DNA from: Paraphysomonas bandaiensis
Taxonomy: Eukaryota > Protista > Chrysophyceae
Assembly: GCA_965644295.1 (NCBI GenBank)
Contig: CBFFRP010000069.1
Coordinates: 1-64,000, forward strand
Direction of reading: 5' to 3'
Length of the DNA: 64,000 nt
In this document: positions 1 to 49,912 of the stretch, piece after piece
Numbering within the stretch: the first letter of the stretch is position 1
How the letters are laid out: each line of letters opens with the position of its first letter
Notes under the pieces: generated by a model
What the model saw: the letters and a program-made list of their open reading frames with translations, nothing else
The model's database searches: none
What the model was told of the DNA's origin: nothing
Position numbers and translations under genes: made by a program

Positions 1-47
1 ACACGAACCTGTCTGCCATGAATGTCTGTTAGATTACATGTACGTAC

Positions 48-1085
48 GTATATATAATGGTTGCGGAAGGAAACCTGTGACTTCAACTCGCCTCAATAGC
101 GGTGGCGACTGCTATTGGGACAGTGTCGTCATGAAAAGATGTGACCTTCCCAACCTTCATATGTTATACTTGTTTGTTCGGTCACCTGTGATATCCACTC
201 GTGTCAGTAGCGGTGGCGACTGCTATTGGCGCAGGGTTGTCATGAAAAGATGTCGACAGAACTTACTTGTATGTTATACTGTATATATAATGGTTGCGGA
301 AGGAAACCTGTGACTTCAACTCGCCTCAATAGCGGTGGCGACTGCTATTGGGACAGTGTCGTCATGAAAAGATGTGACCTTCCCAACCTTCATATGTTAT
401 ACTTGTTTGTTCGGTCACCTGTGATATCCACTCGTGTCAGTAGCGGTGGCGACTGCTATTGGCGCAGGGTTGTCATGAAAAGATGTCGACAGAACTTACT
501 TGTATGTTATACTGTATATATAATGGTTGCGGAAGGAAACCTGTGACTTCAACTCGCCTCAATAGCGGTGGCGACTGCTATTGGGACAGTGTCGTCATGA
601 AAAGATGTGACCTTCCCAACCTTCATATGTTATACTTGTTTGTTCGGTCACCTGTGATATCCACTCGTGTCAGTAGCGGTGGCGACTGCTATTGGCGCAG
701 GGTTGTCATGAAAAGATGTCGACAGAACTTACTTGTATGTTATACTGTATATATAATGGTTGCGGAAGGAAACCTGTGACTTCAACTCGCCTCAATAGCG
801 GTGGCGACTGCTATTGGGACAGTGTCGTCATGAAAAGATGTGACCTTCCCAACCTTCATATGTTATACTTGTTTGTTCGGTCACCTGTGATATCCACTCG
901 TGTCAGTAGCGGTGGCGACTGCTATTGGCGCAGGGTTGTCATGAAAAGATGTCGACAGAACTTACTTGTATGTTATACTGTATATATAATGGTTGCGGAA
1001 GGAAACCTGTGACTTCAACTCGCCTCAATAGCGGTGGCGACTGCTATTGGGACAGTGTCGTCATGAAAAGATGTGACCTTCCCAA
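48..1085. repeat. 233-bp tandem array (~4.5 identical units), each a dimer of 111+122-bp subrepeats carrying a 56-nt hairpin
   Basis: GTATATATAATGGTTGCGG recurs at 48, 281, 514, 747 and 980. Core TAGCGGTGGCGACTGCTATTGG...GTCATGAAAAGATGT occurs twice per unit. Confidence 0.95.
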
Positions 1086-1269
1086 TCTGCACGTGTTGCA
1101 TCCGTGTATTCTGTGCCCATGGTCTTTTGCTTGCAGTAAAATACATATCTATTATAAATATACATTAACTATTGAAATATATTGTACAGATATATTTACT
1201 ATTAGCATGAAAGAACCAGTGCCATGTTGAAGACCTTTATGTCCGCCTGCTGCATGCATTATGTGGTAA

Positions 1270-3092
1270 GAGTGAGATGGTATAGTGTATATAGTTAGAT
1301 GGTATAGGGATGTATAGTGAGATAGTATAGTGGCATATATTGAGATGGTATAGTGGTATATATTGATATGGTATAGTGGTATATAGTGATATGGTATAGT
1401 GGTATATTGTGAGATGGTATAGTGGTATATTGTGATATGGTATAGTGGTATATTGTGAGATGGTATAGTGGTATATTGTGAGATGGTATAGTGGTATATA
1501 GTGATATGGTATAGTGTTATATAGTGAGATGGTATAGTGGTATATAGTGGGATGGTATCTGCGTGTATTGTGAGATGGTACAATGGTTGTATAGTGAGAT
1601 GGTATAGTGTATATAGTTAGATGGTATATGGGTGAATCGTAATATGGTATAGTGGCATATGGTGAGATGGTATAGTGATATGGTATAGTAGTGGTATATA
1701 GTGAGATGGTATAGTGGTATATAGTGAGATGGTATAGTGGTGAATAGTAATATGGTGTAGGGATGTATAGTGAGATGGTATATTAGCATAGTTAGATGGC
1801 ATAGTGATATATAGTTAGATGGTATAGTGCTATAATATAGTGAGATGGTATAGTGATGTATAGTGAGATAGTATAGTGACATATGGTGAGATGGTATAGT
1901 GGTATATAGTGAGATGGTATAGTGGTATATAGTGGGATGGTATCTGGGTATATAGTGAGATGGTACAGTGGTTGTATAGTGAGATGGTATAGTGGTATAT
2001 TGTGAGATGGTATAGTGGTATATTGTGAGATGGTATAGTGGTATATAGTGATATGGTATAGTGTTATATAGTGAGATGGTATAGTGGTATATAGTGAGAT
2101 GGTACAGTGGTTGTATAGTGCGATGGTACAGTGGTTGTATAGTGAGATGGTATAGTGTATATAGTTAGATGGTATATGGGTGAATCGTAATATGGTATAG
2201 TGGCATATGGTGAGATGGTATAGTGATATGGTATAGTAGTGGTATATAGTGAGATGGTATAGTGGTATATAGTGGGATGGTATAGTGGTGAATAGTAATA
2301 TGGTGTAGGGATGTATAGTGAGATGGTATATTAGCATAGTTAGATGGCATAGTGATATAATATAGTGAGATGGTATAGTGATGTATAGTGAGATAGTATA
2401 GTGACATATGGTGAGATGGTATAGTGGTATATAGTGAGATGGTATAGTGGTATATAGTGGGATGGTATCTGGGTGTATAGTGAGATGGTACAGTGGTTGT
2501 ATAGTGAGATGGTATCTGGATGTATAGTGAGATGGTATAGTGACATATGGTGAGATGGTATCGTGGTATATAGTGAGATGGTATAGTGGGATGGTATCTG
2601 GGTGTGTAGTGATATGGTACAGTGGTTGTATAGTGAGATGGTGTAGTGGTATATAGTGAGATGGTATATTAGCATAGTTAGATGGCATAGTGATATATAG
2701 TTAGATGGTATAGTGGTATAATATAGTGAGATAGTATAGTGGCATATGGTGAGATGGTATAGTGATATATAGTGATATGGTATAGTAGTGGTATATAGTG
2801 AGATGGTATAGTGGTATATAGTGAGATGGTATAGTGGTATATAGTGGGATGGTATAGTGGTGAATAGTAATATGGTATCTGGATGTATAGTGAGATGGTA
2901 TATTAGCATAGTTAGATGGCATAGTGATATATAGTTAGATGGTGCAGTGGTTGTATAGTGAGATGGTATAGTGGTATATAGTGAGATAGTATAGTGGTAT
3001 ATAGTGAGATGGTATAGTGATGTATAGTGAGATGGTATAGTGGTATAATATAGTGATGTATAGTGAGGTAGTATATGGGTGTATAGTGAAAT
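1270..3092. repeat. Degenerate ~23-bp satellite (GTGAGATGGTATAGTGGTATATA), C-poor on + strand
   Basis: Continuous variants of the motif with larger internal block duplications. Y/H/T/I-rich minus-strand ORFs are translation artefacts. Confidence 0.95.
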
Positions 3093-4074
3093 ATAAAAGA
3101 ATATCTGATTATTACATGAGAACGGTTGCGTACAGAAACTAGTTTTACATCTATAGAATAACTAATAACTCGACTTACTATATACTACTATTAGCGGGCT
3201 ACCGTCTCGGGACTGCTTGTGCATCGCTGCGAGCACCATGGTTCAACCGTCCCTTGCAGTGAGGTTAATCGGGGGGTCTGCCTTTGGGCAGTGTGTCTGC
3301 CGGGCCTGTATCGTGAGTTTTACGGGGGATGGTTGGGGCTAGATGTATATGAGAGTGTAAGTCGGTGGTGTAGATGGTGCTCGTTGTCGAGGTGGGATTT
3401 CGACCACAAGTAAGGAGGAGTTGTTTCCGGAGTGGTGGTGCTTGTCTCTGTCGGGTTCGGACTCTTGCAGCGGATAGAATTCTTGGGGTGGATGTCGCTA
3501 GGAGTAGTTGGAGTATTTTTGGTGTCGGGTGAGTATCCTGCGACGGGCGTTGCTGTGAGTGTGGTGGGGTCGTAATCGGTGTTACTGATGCCGTGTCTGT
3601 GTTGTGATGTCTGAGACCTCTGTTTCGAAGCATGCGGAGCCCTCCACCATATAGGGGAAGGAGGATAGAGGTTACGGATTTTTCGAGAACGTGGAACTGA
3701 TGTTCGAGCAGTGAGCTGGATATGTGGCGTCCGAATGCGTCGGTCAATTGTGTGGCAGTAATGTGGCCGGTCCAGTAGCGCTCAGCCTGGGGTGTGTGTG
3801 GATTCCATGCGGCTTTTGCTAGTTTGATTATGGCGGTGTGGAACCAGGGATGGGGGAGCGTGCGTGTGCGAAGTTTGTCGAACTTGTGGTGTGCTTGGTG
3901 AACATCTTCACGTATGTGAGTGAGGTCGGGGTGTGTGCAGGTGAGAAGCATGTGTGCCATGTTGTCGATTGGGAGTGCACAGTCTGCGCATGCTGAGGCC
4001 GTTGTTATGTGATCAGGCCCGGTTTTCCCTTTGGCTTGATTTCTGCCCATCGCGTATGATTTGTCCCATACGTA
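3093..4074 (-). mobile_element. 5'-truncated non-LTR retrotransposon (LINE) 3' fragment inserted into the satellite
   Basis: 15-bp TSD GGTGTATAGTGAAAT at 3078-3092 and 4075-4089. The reading frame is open from the truncation point (YVWDKSYAMGRNQ...) and contains the CX2CX7HX4C zinc knuckle CADCALPIDNMAHMLLTC, typical of the region C-terminal to non-LTR RT. Confidence 0.8.
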
Positions 4075-4462
4075 GGTGTATAGTGAAATGGTATATGGGT
4101 GTATAGTGAGATAGTGTAGTGATGTATAGTTAGGTGGTATAGTGGTATACAGTAGATAGTATAGTGGTATAATATAGTGGGATGGTATAGTGATGCATAG
4201 TAATATGGTATGGGTGTATAGTGAGATGGTATATGGGTGTATAGTGAGATGGTATATGGGTGTATAGTGAGATAGTGTAGTGATGTATAGTTAGGTGGTA
4301 TAGTGGCATACAGTAGATGGTATAGTGGTATAATATAGTGGGATGGTATAGTGATGCATAGTAATATGGTATGGGTGTATAGTGAGATGGTATATGGGTG
4401 TATAGTGAGATGGTATGTGGGTGTATTCTGAGATGGTGTAGTGGTGTTTAGTGAGATGGTTA
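4075..4462. repeat. Continuation of the G/T/A satellite
   Basis: Same motif family as 1270-3092. Confidence 0.9.
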
Positions 4463-4473
4463 TAGTTCATACT

Positions 4474-4693
4474 TGTGAACTGTATGTAATATATATGTGT
4501 AGTCGGTGACTTTTATTGCTGTAAAACTGAAGTAATATGGAAGAAATTAGTAAAAAATATTATAAATAATACTCTTCACACTGTTATTAACTTCATAGTT
4601 ACTTATTGTGCATAGTTATACCCTTTTCCGACCATCACCAAAAATTTCACCAGGTTTTACATCAAAACCCAGGTTTTGGTATTACCTCGACTT
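4474..4693. repeat. Dispersed ~220-bp repeat; diverged reverse-complement copy at ~53101-53310
   Basis: ...CCAGGTTTTGGTATTACCTCGACTT matches the reverse complement of AAGTCGAGGTAATACCAAAACCTGG at 53101, and similarity continues along the block. Confidence 0.75.
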
Positions 4694-7281
4694 CAATACA
4701 AAATAGGACAAATTGTTGAACGTATGACTCCGACATTTCAGCTAGCCTCACGACGGTCAACACTCTTATAAATTTCTTCCTCATTATGACATCATCTTAT
4801 TGTCTCTGATAACTTCTTCCTGAGAACTTCCCTGATCTTCACCTAAACACTTCTTTCTATTGAAGCATCTTATAATGATGATGACACCACACAACGATTT
4901 GTCTTGGTAAAAATATCAGCAGTTTGGTCACCAGTACTAACATGATAATGTGATTCAATTGAATGGGCCGCCTGGGTCGATTCAACAGTCGGACTCGCAC
5001 CTTTTCGTGGTGTTCTTGCGGACAAGTACCGTAGACATTTCTCCGCCGGGAACTAACGTGAGCCGCATATTATATATAGACAGCAGATAGCAGATATTGT
5101 TCTGCCCACTCATAGCTAAATACTTGTGTTAGGTAGACACGATCTTATACAGTCAAAGTATTTCAGTATCTCTAACATAATTCATATCTTACATTTATAT
5201 CATGTACTACAGTTTCCAACTACTGTATTCTTCAACTAACGGTCATAATTCAAATACCTTAAAATACAACTTTTAACTTTTCTCAAAGATGCAAAAATAA
5301 ACGCCCCCTCTAAATTCACAGCTGTATATTAGTTCTTTACACCACGAGACAGAAGTGACGGATACGCAACCACCCAATACAAAATAGGACAAATTGTTGA
5401 ACGTATGACTCCGACATTTCAGCTAGCCTCACGACGGTCAACACTCTTATAAATTTCTTCCTCATTATGACATCATCTTATTGTCTCTGATAACTTCTTC
5501 CTGAGAACTTCCCTGATCTTCACCTAAACACTTCTTTCTATTGAAGCATCTTATAATGATGATGACACCACACAACGATTTGTCTTGGTAAAAATATCAG
5601 CAGTTTGGTCACCAGTACTAACATGATAATGTGATTCAATTGAATGGGCCGCCTGGGTCGATTCAACAGTCGGACTCGCACCTTTTCGTGGTGTTCTTGC
5701 GGACAAGTACCGTAGACATTTCTCCGCCGGGAACTAACGTGAGCCGCATATTATATATAGACAGCAGATAGCAGATATTGTTCTGCCCACTCATAGCTAA
5801 ATACTTGTGTTAGGTAGACACGATCTTATACAGTCAAAGTATTTCAGTATCTCTAACATAATTCATATCTTACATTTATGTCATGTACTACAGTTTCCAA
5901 CTACTGTATTCTTCAACTAACGGTCATAATTCAAATACCTTAAAATACAACTTTTAACTTTTCTCAAAGATGCAAAAATAAACGCCCCCTCTAAATTCAC
6001 AGCTGTATATTAGTTCTTTACACCACGAGACAGAAGTGACGGATACGCAACCACCCAATACAAAATAGGACAAATTGTTGAACGTATGACTCCGACATTT
6101 CAGCTAGCCTCACGACGGTCAACACTCTTATAAATTTCTTCCTCATTATGACATCACCTTATTGTCTCTGATAACTTCTTCCTGAGAACTTCCCTGATCT
6201 TCACCTAAACACTTCTTTCTATTGAAGCATCCTATAATGATGATGACACCACACAACGATTTGTCTTGGTAAAAATATCAGCAGTTTGGTCACCAGTACT
6301 AACATGATAATGTGATTCAATTGAATGGGCCGCCTGGGTCGATTCAACAGTCGGACTCGCACCTTTTCGTGGTGTTCTTGCGGACAAGTACCGTAGACAT
6401 TTCTCCGCCGGGAACTAACGTGAGCCGCATATTATATATAGACAGCAGATAGCAGATATTGTTCTGCCCACTCATAGCTAAATACTTGTGTTAGGTAGAC
6501 ACGATCTTATACAGTCAAAGTATTTCAGTATCTCTAACATAATTCATATCTTACATTTATGTCATGTACTACAGTTTCCAACTACTGTATTCTTCAACTA
6601 ACGGTCATAATTCAAATACCTTAAAATACAACTTTTAACTTTTCTCAAAGATGCAAAAATAAACGCCCCCTCTAAATTCACAGCTGTATATTAGTTCTTT
6701 ACACCACGAGACAGAAGTGACGGATACGCAACCACCCAATACAAAATAGGACAAATTGTTGAACGTATGACTCCGACATTTCAGCTAGCCTCACGACGGT
6801 CAACACTCTTATAAATTTCTTCCTCATTATGACATCATCTTATTGTCTCTGATAACTTCTTCCTGAGAACTTCCCTGATCTTCACCTAAACACTTCTTTC
6901 TATTGAAGCATCTTATAATGATGATGACACCACACAACGATTTGTCTTGGTAAAAATATCAGCAGTTTGGTCACCAGTACTAACATGATAATGTGATTCA
7001 ATTGAATGGGCCGCCTGGGTCGATTCAACAGTCGGACTCGCACCTTTTCGTGGTGTTCTTGCGGGCAAGTACCGTAGACATTTCTCCGCCGGGAACTAAC
7101 GTGAGCCGCATATTATATATAGACAGCAGATAGCAGATATTGTTCTGCCCACTCATAGCTAAATACTTGTGTTAGGTAGACACGATCTTATACAGTCAAA
7201 GTATTTCAGTATCTCTAACATAATTCATATCTTACATTTATATCATGTACTACAGTTTCCAACTACTGTATTCTTCAACTA
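4694..7281. repeat. 681-bp tandem array (3.8 near-identical copies): chimera of a Copia 3' end (minus strand) and a SINE-like head (plus strand)
   Basis: Units start at 4694, 5375, 6056 and 6737. The minus strand encodes the Copia RNase H motif YHVSTGDQTADIFTK, then a PPT-like GAGGGGGCG and LTR sequence. The plus strand carries GTCGGACTCGCACCTTTTCGTGGTG. Confidence 0.9.
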
Positions 7282-7350
7282 GACGTCTTTAGGCCTTGAC
7301 GAATAAACAGTAGGCATCCAGGGTATTGGGCCCACCTCAAGGGCATCCGG

Positions 7351-7790
7351 TTCAGTGGAAGTGGCTTCAACATTCATATCTTCACAGATGCAGATTGGGC
7401 TGGAGACATCTTACCGCACCGATCCACTTCGGGATAAATTGTGCTTGCTATGGGTGGACCGCTTACATGGCGGTATATTTTACAAGTCCCTGTCTCGTGT
7501 CTCGACTTCATCAATTCAGAGTGAGTATTAAGCCATGTAAGCTGGTATGCAGAAATTGGTGTGACCTGGGGGGGATGTTGCCGAACTAGGACTTCGACTG
7601 TGCGAACCCACTCCATTTTCCTGGATAGCCAAAGCGCCCGTGATTAAGCACCGAACCCAATTTTCCATAGAGCTTTACTCTCAACACAGGAACTAATTGT
7701 TCATCTTGAAGTAAACTCATGACGTTCTAGCTCTCTTATCAATTGCGTTGTATTATTCAATATTATGCTGCACTCACTCTTTTATAATAA
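7351..7790 (+). pseudogene. Degenerate Copia RNase H fragment
   Basis: Translates FSGSGFNIHIFTDADWAGD..RSTSG* with stops and frameshifts. Confidence 0.75.
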
Positions 7791-7906
7791 ACACTACAAT
7801 CTAGCGTTGAACGAGTTCTAGCTATTTGAATTCTTTAATTGTACACCAATGCCTCGGATTAACTTACTCAGAAATTATCGAAGAAAGACTAGTATATGAC
7901 TTCTGT

Positions 7907-9006
7907 CTAATGCCAGATGATAGAGTTTGACATTAGCAATGAAGCAAAATTCACTCCACATTTTTCTTTAGGTCGAGTGCTATAATCTACTACGATGTTG
8001 TTGAGAGCCCACTGCTCCCAACATGACTGGAACCCTGGCGAATTGAACACCACTCCTGTTTTGGGCCTCGACACAATCTGTTCATCACTTTCAGCAATTC
8101 ATGAAATGCATCCAAGAAAGTATTACACCTGAATAGCTTTAGCATCCTTACTCCCAGTAGGCATGGTGATACTCAAAGCGCAACTGTGTACGTAGCACCG
8201 ATCACGTGTAGTACTGTCAAGACGTGGAGCGTATAGGATGTCGCCAAGTGCAGGGCTACCAAGGGAGCGCAGCATGATGCGTACCTGATGGGTCTTCTCA
8301 GTCATAGGCTTTATCACAAAAGCACGCAATGATGGAGCATTTGCAGTGGAGTAGAGATCATACTCACTCTTTTCTCGCATGGTATCATCCTGCAGACAGA
8401 ATAAAGACTAACATTCGTACGCAACATATTCCCACTCACATCAACACTTCCCTCCAGAATGCTGAAGCTAAACGACTTACTTATAAACCTGCTCTTAGCA
8501 GGATCATTAGTAGAGCGGCACAGCTTCCACTGAGATCGTCTGCTCTTGATTATGTCCCCAACTACAAGTCCCATTTTCTTTCTCGGCTTTGAATTCGATA
8601 TAGCCACGTAATATTTCGATATATCTCCACTTAAGAATGCCCGGGAGAAATAAGATGCACTGTCTTTCGATTTAGCTAGTAGGACGACACCAGACATTGC
8701 ACGATCCAATCTGAAACTACTCGTAAGAAATATATATTTCAGAAGGTAGATTTACCGATGTACAGAATATAACTGGCCTTTATGTGCTATCCTATCCATG
8801 TTTTGAAGAGCTCGAGCCGCAGCCATCAGATTATTACTAGTTTCATCGTCGTGTAATAATCCAAACGGTTTCTCCAAAACAACAGCATGTTCATTTTCAT
8901 AAACCACGTCGACCGCTTCCGCAATTTCATCTGATAGGTATCTACATGCAGAATGAGGGGCTCTGACAACTCTACGAACCAAAGAAACTAGCATGGCACT
9001 AGCCAT
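7907..9006 (-). CDS. RluA-family RNA pseudouridine synthase (multi-exon)
   Basis: Catalytic HR|LD motif split by an intron (YSVHR/LDRAMSGVVLLAK), plus KTHQVR and LGDILY motifs. About 3 short introns. Confidence 0.85.
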
Positions 9007-9423
9007 ATAGATCAAGAAGAACTAGTGAAAGCTAGTATATCGATCAAGTGGAAAGCTCAATCAGTACCCGTAAAGTTTTCTTAACCATCAACATCAACGC
9101 AGGCTGAGCTTGGAGAAGGTAAACTGAAACCTCCAGTTTTGATGATTTTCTTACTGTACACCATTCTGTTTTTTTCGAATTTATTTAACTTTTGATCTTG
9201 AGAAAAACACCACTCCGCACTCGGACGTCGTAACCTATTTTTTTTGCTGGAAGTGATATGAAATACTTGTGACAGCAGTGTCAGAGGCTTCGTTGATATA
9301 CCAGTGTTTCTTGACTATTTATTCCATCTCTCATACTTATCGTGAAGAAATAAACTACTCTCTTCTGTAGTCCCCTTTTCGTCCACTCTGTCTGCGCTAT
9401 CACACTCGATACATCATTACATC

Positions 9424-12140
9424 ATGACAGACAGGATTGGACAGGTGTGGCAGGAAGGAGAAATACTCGCCAGCAGGTAATATTTTAGGTACCAGTTGAA
9501 TTTGGCAGCTAATAATAGTGTATAGAGGTCAGATTCACGATGCCCTCATGTGCTTTCAACAAGGTGTAAATATTCTTGAGCTCCAAAAATGTAGTGTATC
9601 ATACTGTGTTATATCGTCAGCGAAAGCACTTCTGCTAGTAGAATCAAAAAAGAATTACGAGACAAAAGGCTTGTAAGTATAAGCTGTACTTAGATGTATA
9701 GGTATGAAATATACCGTGGTGTAACTATATTCATCAGATCACAATCTGGTGCTAGAATCCCACAAATTCTAGGGGAAATATTGATGAAGGTTGAAAATCG
9801 CTTGTGATGACATGCGTAACATGTTGATAGCTAAACCAAAGTGTTGATAAAAATGTGGCGGTGCTTAGCAAGAATCCAGTCCTATCCCTGCAGTTGAGGC
9901 CCGGGTTTACGAAGAAAGATGTCAAGCGTGCCTACAAACAAGCTGCCCTTAAGTACCACCCAGGTGCGTGAGTGAGAATATTATTCTTAAGCCTCACAAC
10001 TGTGCTAGACAAAAATAAGGACCGCGACACGAGCTGTATATTCGCTGTTGTCCAGGCTGCTTACGAAGTGCTGCTAGCAACTGCCCCCTCTGATCCTCCA
10101 GCTCGAACTGCCTCTGCCATGGGTACAACGCCGTCACATCTTCATTCCAGTTTCCGACGACCGAGCAGTAGTAGGGGTGCTGTAGATCCCATCCATTCTA
10201 CCAAACGGCCACCAGAGACAAATGACGAGTCGAAAGAGAAGCAGCAGCCGAAACAGAAAACCCACCAAGAAGCCTCAGGTATTGCGCACATGTCGTCGGA
10301 TGAGCTCAGAGCGGCGCTGCGTAAGATCGGGGTACATCGACCATATTTCTATTCTTGTATAGTATCACCTCCTTTTTAGTTCGACCGGTTGGAGAGGGCT
10401 ACAAGAGAAGAGTTAATAAAGAAGTATCTAGCAGCGAAGTCTCATTTCGGTGGTCATGACACAAGTGCTGATGCCGGTGCTGGATGGCGCGCCAGGATGA
10501 ACGATGAGTTGCGCGAGAAACGCCAAAGAGAGAGAGAGGCATATTTTTGTTATTATTTTTATTCCTTTGATTCTGAATTCGCTTTACAGACGAGCAGTCG
10601 AAAGAAACAAGCCAAGGAGAGCGAGGCAGGGCATTCATCTGCAGATCGGAACAGACATGAGCGGGTGCAACGTATGAAGCTAGAGCTACCGCGTATGAGT
10701 ATTACTGAACTGCGACGTATGACGAACATATGGTAGGGGTAGAATATGCAGTCGTTTGTTCCTTATGTTTAGCTTGTAGCGGTATATCGACGGCGGGATT
10801 CATCGAGAAGCAAGACTTGCTCTCGGCGCTTTGTGCACACTATGGTATAGCGATAGGGGACTTAGTTTTCCCTAAAGAGAATCTAGAAAAGAGCAATGCC
10901 TCCCCGTGGTAAGTATTTCGGCATTACTGTCCTGTGGCTGTATGCACCACATGACCGATATTAAGTAGTACGAGTAAGAATGCAGAGTCTAGCAAGCCCA
11001 CTGACCCTGGGCCTATTCGACCGAATGAGAGAGTCAGTCTGGATAAGCTACGGCGTGTTATGCAGGCCAGGTTTGGATTCGTCCTTTTTGTAGAATTTTC
11101 TTACTTTTTCGAAGCGGGTGTACCTCCAGAGAAAGTATCAGCAACCGGGGTGAGTTACCTAAAACACAGGTTACCTCCGCTTCAAATGATGTGCCTCCTA
11201 CTGGGAGAAGCAAGTGTAGACCTTGTGCGGGCAATGTTTGGAGTGAGTAGTGCACTACATATACTCATTTTTTCTTATCCTTTCTGCAGCTCGTGAACGA
11301 CTCAAAGACATGGAACGAAAGGTAATGTTCCTCTCTGTGAAATGATAGTTTCATGAAAGTTTGTAGTTGCGAGGCAATCGACTAAAAAGGAACCCGACCC
11401 GTAGTAAACCTGTGACAGTAGATGAAGACGAAACACACATCGACCGCATGTTAGCTGAGGAGGAAAAAAAGTTCCAAAAATTCGAGGGCGTTGGAGCTAC
11501 AGCTACTGGCGTTAGGACAGCTCTTTCTCCCGTTTTTCCAGGGGCAGTTTTAGAAAGTGATAGCGACGACGACGAAATACAGTGGGTCTCACAGCAGGCT
11601 CCTTCGGGCAAGTCTATCTCTATCAATGGTGAAGATGTCTCCAACAAGTCTCCGAAATCAAGAAGCCCTCTGGATGAGGAACTATTCAATAGTATATACA
11701 TCCCTACGGGTGGTCTTAACTTAAATGTGGACGACATTTCCTCCAATGGCGAAACGAACAGCGATAGTGATGATGATGAGTCGGAGTTTGGCAACCCTGA
11801 TATATCTCCAGAACAGCTTAAGGCTATGAGGTTACGGCGCTTTGAGAGCAAGTTGTACAAGTCTTCTGTCAACGAGGCAGACGGTACGGAGACCTGGACA
11901 AAGAAGGAGGATCAGTTTGATAATAGCATAGATGTTACTTCATTTTTAAGCACATTAAACATTAACAAGCCGCTGCACGTGGGCGTTGCACTTCTGTCTG
12001 ATGATGATGACGATGAGGATATAGACGACGGTGCAAATGTTCCCCTCAAGAGATCTTCTCATAATTCAAGTAGACCTTCACTCGTTAGGCCATTGGACAA
12101 TTGCAGTCCGAGCGCAACCGCATGGATGGAACACCGCTGA
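9424..12140 (+). CDS. DnaJ/J-domain-containing protein (multi-exon, acidic low-complexity C-terminus)
   Basis: DVKRAYKQAALKYHP|DKN...AAYEVL, with HPD across an intron. Exon chain to the stop at 12140 is approximate. Confidence 0.7.
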
Positions 12141-12488
12141 TGATTTTACTGCACCTATATGGTGCATCTCAAATGTTACTATATATATGTCTTACTGTAC
12201 TTTTATGTTTTTGATGTTTGTGTTTGCTTCTTTTTATATAATACGGTGCAGCTTTTGTGACAGTAATCTTGGTACAGCGCAACACAAGGAACACGAAATC
12301 TTGAGCAAAATAATATAATTTGCGTTCTGAAATTAGTAGTAATTTTCGTATTAAGTTATAAGGAAAGTATAAAACTTCGCTTCCTTAGCAGTTTTGTGAT
12401 CACTTAGTCAACGTTGAGTTTTGCTGTTTGTGAGCAATTAAATGTCGTAGTTTCTAAGATATTTGAATTATAACCGCTACTCAAAGAA

Positions 12489-12782
12489 TATTAGAATATG
12501 GATCTTATTCTAGTATATTCAGTATGTCACTTGAAGACAATGTACGAGAATACAGTGAAATATAGTGATGTACAAATGTTGTGATGATATTGAGAAACTG
12601 AAATAGGTTGACCTTTCAAGATATGTTCAGTAACGAGAGGTTCGCATATGTAGGATATTATGCAGGGATTATAATGAGTTAGTGTTGGTTATCACAACTT
12701 CGTGTAAACGATACTAATAAATCTATCTAGTCTTACGACAAATTCTCTCTGTGATCTAGTGTAAAATGAGCATTTCTCAATA
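12489..12782 (+). repeat. 5' LTR (294 bp), termini TATTAGAA...TTCTCAATA
   Basis: Identical by eye to 19888-20181. Confidence 0.95.
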
Positions 12783-14232
12783 TGGTAGCGAGCGAGGAGG
12801 AGAGAAGGAGGATAGAGGAGTAGTGCCACAGTTTAATGAGAGCAATGTTGAACAATGGGTTGAAGACTTCGAAACGTTCCTCATGAGGAAAGAGCAAAGT
12901 GAAGTAGCGGTGGAGCCACTACCGAAGGAGAGCGACTTCGGGGAACAGCCACTCACGTTAATGGAGGAGAAGTCTTACAGACAGGCTGTGAAGAAGTACT
13001 GGAAGGCGAATGCCATAGCGTATTCGTACTGTAGAGAGGCAGTGCAATCATCTTCGAAGGCGCTTCAGAAATTCCATCTTTTACATAAAGGGTTCAAGGC
13101 TGATGGAAGAGGAAGCAACAGGTTTAAGGCGCATATTATGATTGATGAGTTGAAGAAGTGCTTTGCTGGAGGGAAGCAAAACAAGATCAGTGAACTGTTG
13201 ACTCAGTATGGCTCTTTCCGTATGCGTCCGGAGGAGACTGCGAAGGACTATATAATACGGTTTGAAATACTGCTGAAAGAGCTACAGGAGCAGCAGCAGG
13301 ACATATCGGAGCTCTCAAAAATAACACGGTTACGAGAAGGTCTGTTGAATGAAGAATATGCTCCTCTGAATGTTGCTTTGTATTTGATGCCTGATGATGT
13401 TGATTATGCAACATTATCAAGGAAGATAGAACGGTATGATGATACCATTCCTGGAAGGATTGCGTTAGAGCGGAAACGCAAGAAGGTGGAGGAGCTGAAT
13501 TTCATTGAAAAGAGCAAACGGTCTCGAACGGAACGGGATAAGCGTAAGAAGGGCAACTGTAGATATTGCAGGAAAGAAGGAATTCCTCATAGCCATTCAA
13601 CTGAACAGTGCAGGAGGAAGCAGAGGAAGAAGGATGGAGAGATATCAGGGCAGCGTCCTGGAAGTGCTGAGTATACGGGATGCAGAAATTGCAAGTCTCT
13701 GGAACATCTTGCTGCTGATTGTCCAACGACGAAGAAAAAGCATTCTAGAAGAGGAGAGAAAGGGAAGAATCATGGTAGGAAGCCGGACAAAAGGCTGCTG
13801 ACAGTAGAGAATATACGGCGTGGAGAACCAGCTGATTTCTCTGATGAAGATGAAGCTAATATGATCGAGGATGTTATGAAATTGTCATGCAATATACATG
13901 AGACGAATATATGTAGTGTAAATGATGACATGCATTATACATATATTGACACCTGCTGTTCATCATCAATGTTCTTGATGAATGATGTGACCATGCTTGA
14001 CACTCATATGAATACATCAAAGGTGATAAACGGCTCTAAGAAGGGATCAGAGATTCATATCACAAGTGTGGGTTCCCGTGGAGCATGGAGAGACATAGAA
14101 ATTTCAGATCAGATCAATCGATGCCTGTGCTCCGGACGTAAGCTGAACGAAATGGGCTATCGATTCACGGTGTGGTATGGGATCCAAATTTATGACTGTA
14201 ATACTGGTGAACTGGTACTGGAGGACCCATGA
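12766..14232 (+). CDS. Copia gag (two CCHC knuckles) plus aspartic protease
   Basis: CRYCRKEGIPHSHSTEQC, CRNCKSLEHLAADC and protease-like YIDTCCS. The ATG lies inside the 5' LTR. Frameshift at ~14225. Confidence 0.9.
   Translation: MSISQYGSERGGEKEDRGVVPQFNESNVEQWVEDFETFLMRKEQSEVAVEPLPKESDFGEQPLTLMEEKSYRQAVKKYWKANAIAYSYCREAVQSSSKALQKFHLLHKGFKADGRGSNRFKAHIMIDELKKCFAGGKQNKISELLTQYGSFRMRPEETAKDYIIRFEILLKELQEQQQDISELSKITRLREGLLNEEYAPLNVALYLMPDDVDYATLSRKIERYDDTIPGRIALERKRKKVEELNFIEKSKRSRTERDKRKKGNCRYCRKEGIPHSHSTEQCRRKQRKKDGEISGQRPGSAEYTGCRNCKSLEHLAADCPTTKKKHSRRGEKGKNHGRKPDKRLLTVENIRRGEPADFSDEDEANMIEDVMKLSCNIHETNICSVNDDMHYTYIDTCCSSSMFLMNDVTMLDTHMNTSKVINGSKKGSEIHITSVGSRGAWRDIEISDQINRCLCSGRKLNEMGYRFTVWYGIQIYDCNTGELVLEDP
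12783..12792 (+). promoter_or_regulatory. Primer binding site TGGTAGCGAG (initiator tRNA-Met-like 3' end)
   Basis: Starts immediately after the LTR with TGG. Resembles the Ty1 PBS TGGTAGCG. Confidence 0.75.
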
Positions 14233-15172
14233 AGAATGGAATGACTGCAGTTCCAACTCAGCAGTTGTTGGAGCTTCCAGATGTGTCTACACCGAGTAAT
14301 TGTGAAGTAAATCTTAGCGATAGGACTGGTGAGGACGAGCTGGAGTTGCTGCATCGGAGAGCGGGTCACTTCAACAAACATGCTTTAGTGGAGGCACATA
14401 AGAGGATGCTCATCATGGGTACAGGGTTGAAACGAAAACACCTCACAGCCAAGGTACACAAAAATCAGTGTTTGTGTGATGTGTGTGCCAGGTCTAAGAT
14501 AACCCGAGTCAGCTTCCGAACGAAGGACGAGAATTCCGTTAGACCGAATTTTTCAGCAGATATCGCTGTGTACTTAAATTGTCCTGCTAGAGGAGGTGAG
14601 AGGTATGTGTTAAAGATAACGCATCATGCCAGCAAAATGTTCTGGGCGACGGGTTTAGTCCACAGAACTGGGGAAGCGGTCTTAGAAGTCTTCAAAGAGC
14701 TATTTAGAGGAGATGTTAAAAGGTACAAGCTCAAGATGGAGCACTATCATGCAGATGGTGCAGGAGAATTAATCAGTGAAGAGCTGCGTCAGTATCTTAG
14801 GACACAGGAGTGCTATCAACATACGTGGAGCTCAACAGACTCTCCAGAAATGAATGCCATAGAGGAGAGGAAGTTCAGAACTGCTGGAGAGATGACTCTT
14901 GCAATGCTAATCCAATCTGGACTGCCACCGCAATTTTGGCTGGATGCATACATGGCAGCCAGATATATTTTGATTCGATTGCCAACGAAAACAGATAAAG
15001 GGTATATGTCTCCTATAGAGTTTCTAACGGGCGAGCCTCCAAATTTGAGATATCTTAGGGTATGGGGGTGTCGAACTTATGTTCTTTCACCGAAGGCGGA
15101 TCGACGAAAGGATTGGGAGGATAAGGCTCTAGTTGGATATTTAATGGGTTACTCTGATGAGAAGGTAGGATA
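14229..15172 (+). CDS. Copia integrase (interrupted by an insertion)
   Basis: LLHRRAGH...CDVC zinc domain, ADGAGE, MNAIEERKFRT, LRVWGC and MGYS motifs. The frame resumes at 16400 after the TSD (GY-HVYLPESNKVVTT). Confidence 0.92.
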
Positions 15173-16384
15173 TTGAAAATCTGATTATTAAGAAGCGCAA
15201 GCTTGTGCGTTGCCGCGACCAACCTAACAACTCGCGCGACACTATGCATAACATGACTCTCATCTAGTTACTATTGCATGCACCGACAAGTGCTCAACTA
15301 TACAACACGATTTAGTTAGCTACATGGGCATACGACGAGTTGCGTGTTTAAGCCGGATCATACGCTCCTGCCCAATCTACTTGTCCTAACACAAACAACT
15401 TGCGGTCGGTGTCTTCGGCATATGTCTCCTGTATATGCGGCAGATCTTTAGGGCCCTCTTCAAGGTGGTGTTCACAGCAGCAGGTAGTCTGGAAGGGAGA
15501 ATAAAGTAGCTCTATAGCGCCGGGTCCTCCCACGGTCACGAAGCGGTCTCACTGGTGCAATTTTGCACACTGACGCATGAAACAGACATCTACCAAAATC
15601 TGTTACAAATTCAAGCTGACTCCAATGTCTTCCCTCCATTGTGTGCACTCATCCAGCACATGCATCCACCTTGCACTCTTCTCCCGAGTGACTTACACTA
15701 GTAGGAAACCGTGCACCTTCCCCGCTCGGATGAAAACCTACTAAGCAAGAATAACATAAAAGCACCACAAATGTACCTGACACTGCTTGGAGAACAGTGC
15801 CAGAGTCTTGATATAATCTCAATGACCTGGGTCAGGAGAAACCAAGACTAGGCAGTAGACGTGTGAGAAGACATGACAGGTCTAATCACATCATTGCCAT
15901 TGCCATGCATCCATGAGGAAAGTTTGACGCATTACCTCGGTCATTGGCCACATAGATACCGAATAATGTGAACTCATACCCAGCATCAATCACTCAAAGC
16001 AAACGCAGGGAGCAAGCAGAATGTTGTTATACCTGACATCTGCTGACTTCAGGTGTTTTGAGTTCTTAAGGTGAACATCCCGGATGCTTAACTTCAGCAG
16101 GCAGCCCAATACCCCGGTTACCCTTCTGGTGGGCCCTGTGTCCCGGATGCCCTTGAGGTGGGCCCATTCCCGGATGCCTGTTTATTCGTCAGGGCCCAAA
16201 GACGTCTACACAAGTGACACTTATTAGTGTCCCTTGTACCACACAAGCATTTGGCTATGAGTGGGCAGAACAATATATCTGCTGACTATATAATATGCGG
16301 CTCACGTTAGTTTCCCGGAGAAATATCTCCGGTACTTATCCCCCAGAACACCACGAAAAGGTGCGAGTCCGACTTTGTTGAGGG
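15173..16384 (-). mobile_element. 1212-bp non-coding SINE-like (non-autonomous non-LTR) insertion in the Copia integrase
   Basis: 15-bp TSD TGAGAAGGTAGGATA (15158-15172, 16385-16399). Removing the insert restores the integrase frame. Its 5' ~400 nt match a repeat found throughout the window. Confidence 0.9.
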
Positions 16385-16399
16385 TGAGAAGGTAGGATA

Positions 16400-18323
16400 C
16401 CATGTATATCTTCCTGAATCAAACAAGGTGGTGACTACAGTCCATATATTGACTGATGAGTCAACGCCATCACGATCAGAGAAGTATTTCGCAGAGATTG
16501 ATGCTCTTCGAGTGCGGGAGGCCGCTAGACCCAAGCTTGCATCCGACTATGTCAGCTTAGAAGGAACGTATCATATTGATGATGAGGACGGACTTCTGTA
16601 TAAGACAACAAGAGTTGTAGAACGTAAGGGTGTGATTGTAGCATACCGTTCACTTGTTACTGCAGGTCGCGAGCATATAGAGCACCGGGTGCCTATACAC
16701 GTCGAAGACGTGGTGCGTATGACTGCAGAAACCCCCGGGAATACCGGGTACATAGGAAAGGGGGACGCCCTGAGTACTACGCCAGCCAGGGAGCTGGACC
16801 AGGGAAGACCTGGAGGGTTCCAGGAGAGTCCTGACCCAACCTGTCAACAGACAGTCGTGAGGTTGCAGACCTCGACAGACCGTGGGTCTGGGGATGCGAG
16901 CGGGGCTCCTCCCACACCGCAAGATTTGCGGGCTCAGGATGAGCAAGGTATGGGTTCGTATATATCTACTAGACGACCTATTGAACTAGATGGTGATGGT
17001 CGTGTACGGCGGAAACGGCTACAGCGTAGGTTGGCGAACGCATCGGTGTTAGGAGAAATAAATATGGTTGAGGTGCCAGATGCATGCACTGTTAACTTTA
17101 AACATGCAGAGTTTCAACATGATGACTTTAAGATACCAGACTCCTATGCTGAAGCGGAGAGATCTCCACAGTACATGAAGTGGCGAGAAGCTCGGAAGGT
17201 GGAGAAGACCTCACTACTGAAGAGACGTGTCTTAAAGATTGTGCGGACTCCACGGGGAGTGAAGTTGGTGCGAGCAAAGTATGTTCACACGGTGAAGAGA
17301 GACCTTCTGGGGAATGTAGTCAAGTATAAGGCGCGGCTGGTTGCATTAGGGAATCTACAAGAAAAAACGGAGGAGGAGCAGTCCACGTTTGCTCCAGTGG
17401 TCAAAGGAATAACCATTCGACTGGTCCTCGCGATTGCGTTTATGTTCCATATGCATGTACATCAGTTGGATGTATCATCAGCGTTTTGTTATGCCGATCT
17501 TGAAGAGGATGTTTATATGGCACCTCCACCTGATGAAGAGTTGCCAGCGGGGTGGTGTTTTCAATTGATCAAGGCCTTATATGGTTTGCGGTCATCACCG
17601 AGGCAGTGGAACAAGCATATTGACAAGTTTATCAAATCGTTACATTTTACTGCTTGCATTTTAGATACATGCTTGTATATGCGATGGAGTAATGGTCAAT
17701 TGCACTTATTGCTGATATATGTTGATGATATTATCATTGCATCTGCTGATCTCACCTACTTAGAAAGTGTTAAACGTAGGTTCTGCGAAACGTTTGAAAT
17801 GCACGATCTGGGTGTGTGCAAACGGTTTCTGAATATCAGAATCACGAGAGGCGAGGACTGGTACATGTTAGATCAATCGGAATATGCCAAGAATATTGTA
17901 AAGAAATTCAGTTCGTTTATGGGAAAGAGCAGTAAGAATAAGGAGACTCCACTACCTACCAATGTTCAGGATTTGTTGACAGATCAACGTGAGCTGACGG
18001 AGGAGCAGAAGCAGTGGGTCGAATCATTTCCGTATAGAGGAATTATTGGAGCGGTATTGCATTTGGCGATTCACACTAGACCTGATCTGGCTTACGCTGT
18101 GGGGTTATTGGCTCGATTTAGTACTTCTCCAACATATGCGACTTGCAGATTAGCTATTCATTTGTTGAAATATTTACGTGGTACCGTTGATAAGGGAATC
18201 AGATTCAGTGGGAGTGAGTTTGATTTACATGTATTCAGTGATTCAGACTGGGCTGGGGATAGGATGACTCGGCGGTCCACAACGGGATACATCGTGTTTT
18301 TATGTGCGGGCGCATTGGCCTAA
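16400..18323 (+). CDS. Copia integrase C-terminus and reverse transcriptase
   Basis: KARLVALG, QLDVSSAF, KALYGLRSSPRQW, YVDD, RPDL and SDSDWAGD motifs. Confidence 0.95.
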
Positions 18324-19278
18324 ACTGTTCATTTTGTTCAGCGAACCGCTGCTGAAGGAACTCCATAATGTTTGGAACCTCTTCTTCCGAACTCATAATC
18401 GACAATAAGAATAAACAATGTTTCTTTCTATCCGACTAAAGTATTAATACTGTAATCTTTCTGATGAGAAAGACCGTGTTTACAACGTTCTAAGAATTTA
18501 AAGTGCTTCCCAAACCGAGAATACACTGTCCAGAACACCAAACCGGTGAAACTGCCTCCTAACACAAGCAAACCGCGAGTATAGCATATCAAATCGTTAC
18601 ATTTTACTGCTTGCATTTTAGATACATGCTTGTATATGCGATGGAGTAATGGTCAATTGCACTTATTGCTGATATATGTTGATGATATTATCATTGCATC
18701 TGCTGATCTCACCTACTTAGAAAGTGTTAAACGTAGGTTCTGCGAAACGTTTGAAATGCACGATCTGGGTGTGTGCAAACGGTTTCTGAATATCAGAATC
18801 ACGAGAGGCGAGGACTGGTACATGTTAGATCAATCGGAATATGCCAAGAATATTGTAAAGAAATTCAGTTCGTTTATGGGAAAGAGCAGTAAGAATAAGG
18901 AGACTCCACTACCTACCAATGTTCAGGATTTGTTGACAGATCAACGTGAGCTGACGGAGGAGCAGAAGCAGTGGGTCGAATCATTTCCGTATAGAGGAAT
19001 TATTGGAGCGGTATTGCATTTGGCGATTCACACTAGACCTGATCTGGCTTACGCTGTGGGGTTATTGGCTCGATTTAGTACTTCTCCAACATATGCGACT
19101 TGCAGATTAGCTATTCATTTGTTGAAATATTTACGTGGTACCGTTGATAAGGGAATCAGATTCAGTGGGAGTGAGTTTGATTTACATGTATTCAGTGATT
19201 CAGACTGGGCTGGGGATAGGATGACTCGGCGGTCCACAACGGGATACATCGTGTTTTTATGTGCGGGCGCATTGGCCT
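17630..19278 (+). repeat. 692-bp direct duplication of RT/RH (17630-18321 = 18587-19278) around a 265-bp foreign filler
   Basis: The two copies are identical by eye, offset 957 bp. Confidence 0.93.
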
Positions 19279-19708
19279 GGCAGTCCAAGCTTCAGACCAC
19301 AGTTGCGACTTCGAGCGTGGAATCTGAGTATATGGCGGAGTATGCGGCTATGCAAGAACTGGTGTGGCTTCGGGGGGTGTTCAAGGAGCTCGGACTCTTG
19401 GTAGCGAAGCCGACTCCATTCTTTATGGATAGTAAGAGTGCAAAGGATCTTTCAGAGAATCCAGTGTATCATAAGAGGTCGAAGCATATTGACATCACAA
19501 GTATCACTGGATAAGAGAACATGTTAATGGAAAATTTCCTACAGCAAAGTGGATTCATGTATCTACGGATGATATGGCGGCTGATATTTTTACAAAGGCG
19601 TTGTCCACGAAGATCTTCAGTCGTCATGAGAAAACGATTACCGGGGTTAAGAGGAGTGTGTCTAACAGTGTGGAGGAGCAGCAGAAGAAACGACCCCGAA
19701 GAGGTTAA
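18587..19708 (+). pseudogene. Second RT C-terminal copy plus RNase H, with a frameshift
   Basis: SSVESEY and HKRSKHIDI motifs, then a 2-bp extra at ~19498 before KYHWIREHV...ADIFTK. Confidence 0.9.
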
Positions 19709-47344: not shown

Positions 47345-49912
47345 CTATGTTGATACATGATTTGGTGTAGTGTCTTGAACAGACAACATCCCAGCATTCA
47401 CTCGGGTCTCCGTGTCCCCATCATCATACTTGACATCGAATGTCCCATCCCCACGATCACGTGTTATCACTGCAGGAAATGCCTTCGATTTTCCACGATA
47501 CCGAGCATTAACCTTCGTACCTTCCTTGAGAGTAGAATGCTCTACTACATATGGTGTTGGTGCTTTATGATTTGGTGTAGTGTCTTGAACAAACAACATC
47601 CCAGCATTTACTCGGGTCTCCGTGTCCCCATCATCATACTTGACATCGAATGTCCCATCCCCACGATCACGTGTTATCACTGCAGGAAATGCCTTCGATT
47701 TTCCACGATACCGAGCATTAACCTTCATACCTTCCTTGAGAGTAGAATGCTCTACTACATATGGTGTTGGTGCTACATGATTTGGTGTAGTGTCTTGAAC
47801 AGACAACATCCCAGCATTTACTCGGGTCTCCGTGTCCCCATCATCATACTTGACATCGAATGTCCCATCCCCACGATCACGTGTTATCACTGCAGGAAAT
47901 GCCTTCGATTTTCCACGATACCGAGCATTAACCTTCGTACCTTCCTTGAGAGTAGAATGCTCTACTACATATGGTGTTGGTGCTTTATGATTTGGTGTAG
48001 TGTCTTGAACAGACAACATCCCAGCATTCACTCGGGTCTCCGTGTCCCCATCATCATACTTGACATCGAATGTCCCATCCCCACGATCACGTGTTATCAC
48101 TGCAGGAAATGCCTTCGATTTTCCACGATACCGAGCATTAACCTTCGTACCTTCCTTGAGAGTAGAATGCTCTACTACATATGGTGTTGGTGCTTTATGA
48201 TTTGGTGTAGTGTCTTGAACAGACAACATCCCAGCATTTACTCGGGTCTCCGTGTCCCCATCATCATACTTGATATCGAATGTCCCATCCCCACGATCAC
48301 GTGTTATCACTGCAGGAAATGCCTTCGATTTTCCACGATACCGAGCATTAACCTTCATACCTTCCTTGAGAGTAGAATGCTCTACTACATATGGTGTTGG
48401 TGCTACATGATTTGGTGTAGTGTCTTGAACAGACAACATCCCAGCATTTACTCGGGTCTCCGTGTCCCCATCATCATACTTGACATCGAATGTCCCATCC
48501 CCACGATCACGTGTTATCACTGCAGGAAATGCCTTCGATTTTCCACGATACCGAGCATTAACCTTCGTACCTTCCTTGAGAGTAGAATGCTCTACTACAT
48601 ATGGTGTTGGTGCTTTATGATTTGGTGTAGTGTCTTGAACAGACAACATCCCAGCATTCACTCGGGTCTCCGTGTCCCCATCATCATACTTGACATCGAA
48701 TGTCCCATCCCCACGATCACGTGTTATCACTGCAGGAAATGCCTTCGATTTTCCACGATACCGAGCATTAACCTTCGTACCTTCCTTGAGAGTAGAATGC
48801 TCTACTACATATGGTGTTGGTGCTTTATGATTTGGTGTAGTGTCTTGAACAAACAACATCCCAGCATTTACTCGGGTCTCCGTGTCCCCATCATCATACT
48901 TGACATCGAATGTCCCATCCCCACGATCACGTGTTATCACTGCAGGAAATGCCTTCGATTTTCCACGATACCGAGCATTAACCTTCATACCTTCCTTGAG
49001 AGTAGAATGCTCTACTACATATGGTGTTGGTGCTACATGATTTGGTGTAGTGTCTTGAACAGACAACATCCCAGCATTTACTCGGGTCTCCGTGTCCCCA
49101 TCATCATACTTGACATCGAATGTCCCATCCCCACGATCACGTGTTATCACTGCAGGAAATGCCTTCGATTTTCCACGATACCGAGCATTAACCTTCATGC
49201 CTTCCTTGAAAGTAGGCTGAGGTGCGACGGTGGAAAGATGTTTCGGTATTGTTTTCACCATGACTCGTTTGTGTGTAACACTCTTGTGTGTACTGTCCGC
49301 CTTTTTGATTACATTAAGCTCTGTGTCTGTATTTGTAGTTTCATCTATATTCCGCGTTTACAATGTCAATAAAATTAATAATTTTAAGTGTTAAGTCATA
49401 CCTTGTTGCCTTGTTTTCCACCGCATGGCATCAGCAAAAACAATCCGGTCTGTCGAATTTGCGGTAGTTTGCAGGGGATCCTGCCACTGCATGGAAAAGT
49501 CTCTCTCTCGAACCAACGAGGGTTTCACAATTCGACCACCTTCCTGTTCTAGCCAGTGCTCCTCCCACTGTGCACCACGATCAGATTTTTCTGTGCGATA
49601 TCCAGATGTCCCCAGTAGCATATCACTCTCTTCGCCGTCCTTTTCCTCCCCCATATTCTGATAAATAAAGTGAATCAAAATACCACAAAACAGCACTCCC
49701 ACGACGGAAAACATAATTGCGATAGCTTTTATTCGGAATTCGACTGTTCTATTGGCTTCATTTTGTGTGACGGTTGGGGCAAGAGTTACAGAGGATGCCT
49801 GTGGTGGGTTCGCTACAGTATAGGTCGGCTGTAGGGTTGGTATGTCTGTGCATTGGGCAGCTTCCAACAGAAGCGATAAAATAGATATAGGGATAACTTT
49901 GAGTAGACACAT
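47345..49912 (-). CDS. Predicted type-I membrane protein: signal peptide, S/T/P-rich ectodomain, one TM, cytoplasmic array of 9 Tudor/Agenet-like domains (exons 49912-49402, 49344-47345)
   Basis: A 57-nt GT-AG intron (49401-49345) joins the two ORFs in frame (QQ-D-ETTNT...RVMVKT). The repeat EGMKVNARYRGKSKAFPAVITRDRGDGTFDVKYDDGDTETRV fits the Tudor pattern. Confidence 0.75.
47350..49210 (-). repeat. 210-bp coding tandem repeat x9 with a 630-bp higher-order pattern
   Basis: Units are nearly identical. Diagnostic variants (M/T, V/K) recur every third unit. Confidence 0.95.

Follow-up and report, generated by a model that had tools for sequence, protein, structure and literature searches.

The hairpin array near the start of the 64,000-nucleotide stretch of Paraphysomonas bandaiensis DNA analysed here (the window) is almost certainly cargo of a non-autonomous cut-and-paste DNA transposon with terminal inverted repeats (TIRs) and 3-bp target-site duplications (TSDs). 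Our main reading, to which we assign a probability of roughly 0.55, is that the array is a transposon-internal satellite in which the hairpin module has been retained as a fold of the plus-strand RNA. The RNA part of this reading draws on three observations: the differences between the two hairpin types, A and B, preserve or improve pairing; G-U pairs are tolerated in the stem whereas A.C pairs are not; and the corresponding DNA fold is weak. A preliminary description of this DNA had set a structured-RNA array against a satellite, which proved to be a false choice, as the array is a satellite inside a multi-copy TIR element.

Tandem Repeats Finder reported a single array at window positions 48-1085, with a period of 233, 4.5 copies, 100% matches and 0 indels. 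A repeat search found the copies spaced at 233 to be 100% identical, with an incomplete final copy at 980-1114 (91%). The nine tandem 56-nt hairpins described previously were all recovered, five of type A and four of type B, in the following arrangement:

48..1097, plus strand: tandem array of four 233-bp units and a fifth A subunit (980-1097)
48-170 and 171-280, plus strand: A subunit and B subunit, together one 233-bp unit
77..132, plus strand: hairpin A, copy 1 (RNA minimum free energy (MFE) fold and covariance model R1)
188..243, plus strand: hairpin B, copy 1 (RNA and DNA folding)
310..365, plus strand: hairpin A, copy 2 (covariance model R1)
421..476, plus strand: hairpin B, copy 2 (covariance model R1)
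543..598, plus strand: hairpin A, copy 3 (covariance model R1)
654..709, plus strand: hairpin B, copy 3 (covariance model R1)
776..831, plus strand: hairpin A, copy 4 (covariance model R1)
887..942, plus strand: hairpin B, copy 4 (covariance model R1)
1009..1064, plus strand: hairpin A, copy 5, the last (covariance model R1)

The five A copies are identical to one another, as are the four B copies, and the nine hairpins thus amount to two distinct sequences, which are 82% identical. Hairpin A has a GGCG loop, a 10-bp apical stem and an interrupted lower stem, and hairpin B has 24 bp, 6 of them G-U. Both subunits share a module of ~76 nt, composed of a short 5' flank, the 56-nt stem-loop with its GGCG loop and a 3' tail that starts CAUGAAAA; outside this module, the A and B linker sequences can barely be aligned. 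The linkers noted between the hairpins are present, but they pair in part with each other and are not mere spacers. Each 233-bp unit joins two old paralogous versions, A and B, of a single 56-nt stem-loop module with conserved flanks, and the fifth A subunit continues into unique transposon sequence.

The extent of the carrier element was established by comparison between loci. Window positions 1-4693 match other loci at 99.3-99.98% identity, five or more of them at 99.9%, and the homology common to these loci ends sharply at 4693. Where leftward sequence is present, homology runs 2172 bp further to a common boundary, and a complete copy of 6865 bp was located at 2590-9454 of locus L033, on the minus strand. 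Contig C69, which carries the window, begins inside the element, 47 bp ahead of the array. The parts of the transposon within the window are:

1..4693, plus strand: right-hand 4.7 kb (element positions 2173-6865) of the 6865-bp TIR transposon
1263..3047, plus strand: 23/46-bp GT-rich minisatellite (46-mer in ~39 copies), with a second block at 4075-4466
3265..4050, minus strand: 261-aa open reading frame (ORF) inside the transposon, with no Pfam match and weak language-model recognition
4669..4693, minus strand: right TIR, 25 nt, the perfect inverse of the left end in complete copies

The right TIR is followed at 4694-4696 by CAA, presumed to be one side of the target duplication; the other side falls beyond the contig. 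Genome-wide, the 25-nt TIR was found at 285 ends, versus 0 for a reversed control, and a 3-bp TSD flanks seven of nine complete members. The TIR family comprises ~140 members of 0.6-8.1 kb in the 62.5-Mb assembly, with the ends as their sole common part; 14 of these carry the hairpin array, with 7 to 11 hairpins each, and shorter members without the array still show TSDs. Elsewhere in the window, a fragmentary second member of the family occupies 53101-53665, where a perfect 25-bp TIR (53101-53125) is followed by rearranged subterminal pieces at 83-87% identity, with no partner end in the window.

The array-bearing variant of 6865 bp is a mosaic of tandem blocks: one of ~240 bp in three copies, one of ~550 bp in two copies, the 233-bp array and the 23/46-bp minisatellite. 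Because the same transposon holds several other tandem blocks, tandem duplication of the hairpin unit needs no function. In L033, the threefold ~240-bp block (8450-9050, minus strand; element positions ~400-1000) resembles a captured exon with a 5' splice site, GGTAAG, and this exon-like block reads on the strand opposite to the hairpins. Such a composition suggests that the element collects and duplicates fragments of the host or of other transposable elements.

No transposase was found in the members searched for one (L033, L046, L047, L062 and L064), and the larger and intermediate members, considered as possible autonomous partners (L046, L047 and L062-L064), yielded none; the element is therefore called a non-autonomous TIR transposon. 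A search with the Harbinger DDE domain returned 38 DDE_Tnp_4 matches, none of which adjoins a TIR among the TIR ends listed. The 261-aa ORF is not a transposase and is possibly a LINE-derived fragment. The two long ORFs of L047 are not transposases either but belong to a nested LINE. This locus (G000:C159:103500-112000, positions 1006-7263) is a 7.2-kb member of the TIR family; its 877-aa ORF carries endonuclease and RVT_1 domains, and its 747-aa ORF lies nearest, by language model, to diatom hypothetical proteins and RNase H/zf-RVT clusters.

At 100% identity, the 233-bp unit occurs in 14 arrays on 14 contigs of the assembly, in addition to two diverged single loci on contigs C26 and C297. 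A search with the apical 22-mer, allowing up to 3 mismatches, gave 115 matches (control 0), and the arrays hold all the matches listed. Covariance model R1, built from five distinct hairpin versions, returned 115 copies genome-wide at E<=1, namely the 14 arrays, C26 and C297, and no more distant paralogue beyond these known copies. On C26, a B unit and an A unit remain (89-91% identity), and on C297 a single A unit (78%). Beyond the hairpin, both loci continue into the unique stretch and the minisatellite known from the transposon, which identifies them as old and dead relatives of this element. That the array copies are perfectly identical reflects very recent tandem duplication and transposition rather than nine conserved genes. 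Metagenome pattern scans and a viral scan for relatives of the hairpin array found none.

Many of the arrays stand at contig starts, which prompted us to consider a subtelomeric repeat. This was rejected because six arrays are internal to contigs of 350-650 kb and the array sits at the same place in one TIR element. Contigs C69, C537, C338 and C354 (the latter three corresponding to L042, L043 and L041) all begin at a shared position within the element, with 47-61 bp left ahead of the array, a pattern resembling an assembly break at a repeat junction rather than a biological end.

We then compared folding between strands and between RNA and DNA parameters. As plus-strand RNA, hairpin A reaches -23.8 kcal/mol (z -4.1) and hairpin B -30.6 kcal/mol (z -5.75), and in neither case was any of 200 dinucleotide shuffles as stable. 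Hairpin A folds on both strands, whereas the minus strand of hairpin B (-10.4 kcal/mol, z -0.3) does not fold, which upholds the strand-specific structure proposed in the preliminary description. For RNA of two units, the plus strand gave -184 kcal/mol (z -8.3) versus -128 kcal/mol (z -3.7) for the minus strand, and the plus strand folded better than the minus strand in all five versions (A, B and three relics). With DNA parameters, both folds are weak (A, -10.1, z -2.6; B, -7.9, z -1.2); the A/B changes thus make B better than A as an RNA hairpin and worse than A as a DNA hairpin. Hairpin B, with its six G-U pairs, contains no A.C pair. The relic stems are disrupted by a G to A change opposite C, a 2-nt insertion, a 2-nt deletion and the loss of the basal helix, and their fold energies are weaker (-18.7 to -22.2). 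The flanks of A can pair into an outer helix of 11 bp, which exceeds flank shuffles only marginally (P about 0.013); extended outer stems were nevertheless rejected as a robust feature, given that A is marginal and the outer helix of B is not robust (P 0.044 and 0.45).

The strong RNA fold, the weak DNA fold and the plus-strand bias together argue for RNA over single-stranded DNA or a cruciform. A DNA-level signal, acting as single strand or cruciform in transposition, in replication or in the unequal exchange that grows the array, would fit the folding of hairpin A on both strands, the variation in array length from 7 to 11 hairpins and the C433 copy, in which a deletion starts inside a hairpin. 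We nonetheless consider such a signal improbable: the DNA folds have the modest z scores given above, the minus strand of B has no hairpin, so that a cruciform is not maintained, and shorter members that lack the array have TSDs. Double-strand cut-and-paste, by which elements with TIRs and TSDs move, requires no internal hairpin, which also counts against a DNA signal. The deletion in the C433 copy (L031, G000:C433:222000-231999, ~6750-6790) removes ~1.7 kb of internal sequence, starting just after the loop-proximal GGTGG and landing in the minisatellite at a GGT microhomology.

The strength of the RNA-fold reading lies in the comparison of A with B. The two hairpins differ at 10 of 56 positions, and in a common register (A numbering) all 10 differences fall on six base pairs:

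pair 81-128: C-G in A, U-G in B; single change
pair 82-127: U.C mismatch in A, A-U in B; both sides changed
pair 85-124: A-U in A, C-G in B; both sides changed, fully compensated
pair 91-120: C.A mismatch in A, U-G in B; both sides changed
pair 92-119: C-G in A, G-C in B; both sides changed, fully compensated
pair 96-115: A-U in A, G-U in B; single change

There are no differences at unpaired positions, and no pair is broken in B. The changes at 92-119, 96-115 and 91-120 had been recognized before and are correct, and three further pairs, 85-124, 82-127 and 81-128, now join them. When 10 differences were placed at random, at least four pairs were doubly changed with P = 0.00035, and with placement restricted to the variable lower stem the value was P = 0.0018. 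Ten random substitutions in A reached the stability of B in 0.04-0.14% of trials, and ten in B reached the stability of A in 3.5-4.7%. The hairpin copies of the 14 arrays and two relic loci provide only two independent live sequences, to which the five-sequence alignment adds three relics, and the structure was derived from B itself. In this alignment, 91.5% of cells are paired, versus 26-52% in slid registers. The covariation score, taken over five related sequences only, is 0.158 versus 0.104 for shuffles (8/500), and two pairs carry double changes, which is not above shuffles (293/500). Since no homologue was found outside this genome, these comparisons are not a real phylogenetic covariation test; the formal five-sequence test is weak, and the A versus B comparison carries the weight. 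This part of the earlier interpretation, a strand-specific structure under selection, is supported: the fold is strand-specific and the differences are placed as if pairing mattered.

These same data must be weighed against an inert transposon-internal satellite, that is, a quasi-palindrome without function whose G-U excess arose by chance and whose paired changes stem from DNA-level template switching inside the palindrome, from correction of one arm by the other while a hairpin is extruded, or from conversion by paralogues since lost. We regard this as a serious possibility, short of probable. The carrier transposon abounds in other tandem blocks, copies that are 100% identical carry no information on constraint, and no Rfam family or relative outside the genome was found. 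Template switching has been documented as a source of hairpins, which it can also maintain, and of changes that look compensatory (PMC8794818), and three of the four doubly changed pairs are Watson-Crick in B. The non-significant double-change count (293/500), the small number of independent sequences and the derivation of the structure from B point the same way. However, a template switch yields a contiguous, perfect complement, and the changed stretch of B contains three bulges and two G-U pairs, so that several separate events would be needed. That B is the better RNA hairpin (-30.6) and the worse DNA hairpin (-7.9), that its minus strand does not fold, and that at least four doubly hit pairs are expected with a probability of 0.0004 to 0.002 also weigh against an inert array.

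The C141 copy bears on the same question. It is diverged, with flanks that differ by 1.3-2%, and its array is identical to the others; the identical block, however, extends 226 bp past the array. We considered this identity as a test of constraint on the hairpin and rejected it, because the block overruns the array and conversion explains it equally well. The extended block points to conversion or recombination rather than to hairpin-specific constraint, and it fits the inert satellite.

Other classes of sequence were examined as well. The preliminary description had raised H/ACA-like guides, and polycistronic single-hairpin guides of the AGA-box type, or another snoRNA class, would agree with a hairpin followed by an A-rich tail containing ANANNA/AGA. 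That motif is present, with AGA lying 5-7 nt after the stem, but it is a low-information match within an A-rich tail; in true guides of this class, the ACA/AGA box stands 3 nt from the mature 3' end and 14-16 nt from the pocket. The MFE and centroid structures show no pseudouridylation pocket, with nothing larger than 2x2 loops (A) or 1-nt bulges (B) interrupting the stems. The Rfam comparison suggested at that stage gave 0 matches at the gathering threshold over the whole window, and at E<=10 on window positions 1-1300 the only match was a chance one to MIR7526 (22 bits against a 110-bit threshold), with no H/ACA or C/D family among the matches. Reading of the sequence on either strand revealed no conserved C/D boxes, and every copy lies inside one transposon variant. 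Guides of this kind are scarcely credible here. A ribozyme was also considered, as CUGUGA...GAAA looked hammerhead-like, and was dismissed when no Rfam ribozyme matched.

Coding exons, or a captured gene fragment encoding a Cys-containing repeat, would be compatible with the one plus-strand frame that stays open for 106-111 codons across the unit, with A and B open in the same frame, and with the resemblance of other transposon blocks to captured exon and intron pieces. Nevertheless, 233 is not a multiple of 3, and the reading frame therefore breaks in each unit; there is no AG acceptor upstream of B, and all minus-strand frames are closed. No similar protein was found among 5.8 billion clusters, the exact ORF products are absent from protein collections, the genome holds no other coding copy, and the relics carry in-frame stops. 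A coding origin is thus very improbable, and we conclude that the array is neither an H/ACA-type guide nor coding.

The A/B dimer was amplified recently, both in tandem and by transposition. If the hairpin module was kept as an RNA fold, the lineage that kept transposing would have preserved the pairing of the plus-strand RNA. Plus-strand transcripts of the element would then present a string of 24-bp stem-loops, or of ~36-46 bp if the flanks pair, and these may enter the double-stranded-RNA/small-RNA pathway of the cell. With up to 3 mismatches allowed, matches to the apical 22-mer and to the 3' arm of B were confined to the arrays, which leaves the element family itself as the target of any small RNA. 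That the array is a transposon-borne source of hairpin RNA feeding such a pathway is a prediction of this model, and a tentative one that we hold to be somewhat unlikely. Equally tentative is the idea that the transposon lineage keeps under selection a candidate G-U-tolerant 56-nt plus-strand RNA module of no known family. Such a module would act between the element and the small-RNA or RNA-binding machinery of the host, for example as a self-limiting source of hairpin RNA or as a decoy. Two considerations count against an RNA role: DNA transposons are not known to require RNA hairpins, and it is not obvious that a silencing trigger would be favoured in the element's own lineage.

Constraint at the RNA level, if true, would make this a rare case of a cut-and-paste transposon that keeps a structured RNA as cargo, and the 14 near-identical arrays would offer a handle on the production and use of hairpin RNA from mobile elements. 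Should there be no such constraint, the locus still illustrates cleanly how a satellite arises within a transposon, and it shows that two paralogous palindromes can mimic RNA covariation.

The window is eukaryotic in content: its remainder includes a Ty1/copia element, a gene for type III glutamine synthetase, a leucine-rich repeat (LRR) gene and Tudor-like repeats. The Ty1/copia retrotransposon (11351-19514) contains zinc-knuckle/gag, SH3_retrovirus and RVT_2 ORFs and is split over several frames. At 47345-49372, a 210-bp tandem repeat of 8.9 copies, 98% identical, forms a 638-aa ORF on the minus strand, in which units of ~70 aa match Tudor-type Pfam families (Tudor_3, 53-BP1_Tudor and Agenet); here, a Tudor-like domain has expanded in frame very recently.

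Set beside known systems, the carrier resembles PIF/Harbinger and CACTA/EnSpm elements in its perfect 25-bp TIRs, in 3-bp TSDs that are often TTA, TAA or CTA, and in its many deletion derivatives. It departs from both in that no transposase was found in any member examined, from CACTA/EnSpm in that its TIR does not start with CACTA, and from TWA-restricted target sites in that CAA, AAT and AAA also occur. With the single-hairpin H/ACA (AGA-box) RNAs of trypanosomatids, Euglena and archaea, the module shares one hairpin and an A-rich tail with AGA; unlike them, it has no pocket, no fixed box-to-pocket spacing and no Rfam match, and it is borne by a transposon.

Tandem stem-loops of ~24 bp with small bulges, carried by a mobile element, recall MITE-type hairpins, hairpin-RNA (hpRNA) loci and polycistronic miRNA clusters. 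Hairpins of transposable elements are known mimics of small-RNA precursors (PMC3495686). The small-RNA biology of diatoms is poorly understood. Small RNAs of the diatom P. tricornutum map mostly to repeats and transposable elements, and canonical miRNAs were not detected in it (PMC4247016). In contrast to miRNA and hpRNA loci, the hairpin core and the 3' arm of B have no target outside the arrays, and the lone match to an Rfam miRNA model is due to chance. Hairpins produced by template switching (PMC8794818) likewise show clustered changes in both stem arms that look compensatory; the B stretch differs from these in being a non-contiguous complement, with bulges and G-U pairs, and in folding better as RNA than as DNA.

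The closest parallel is to satellites within non-autonomous DNA transposons, in which a head-to-tail array lies inside a TIR/TSD element and spreads with it, and, as in other transposon-born satellites, the copy number differs between insertions. As a transposon-borne satellite the array is ordinary. It is set apart from ordinary satellites by its unit, a dimer of diverged stem-loops, and what is unusual is that these two hairpin paralogues differ only at compensating positions, their differences being confined to pairing partners.
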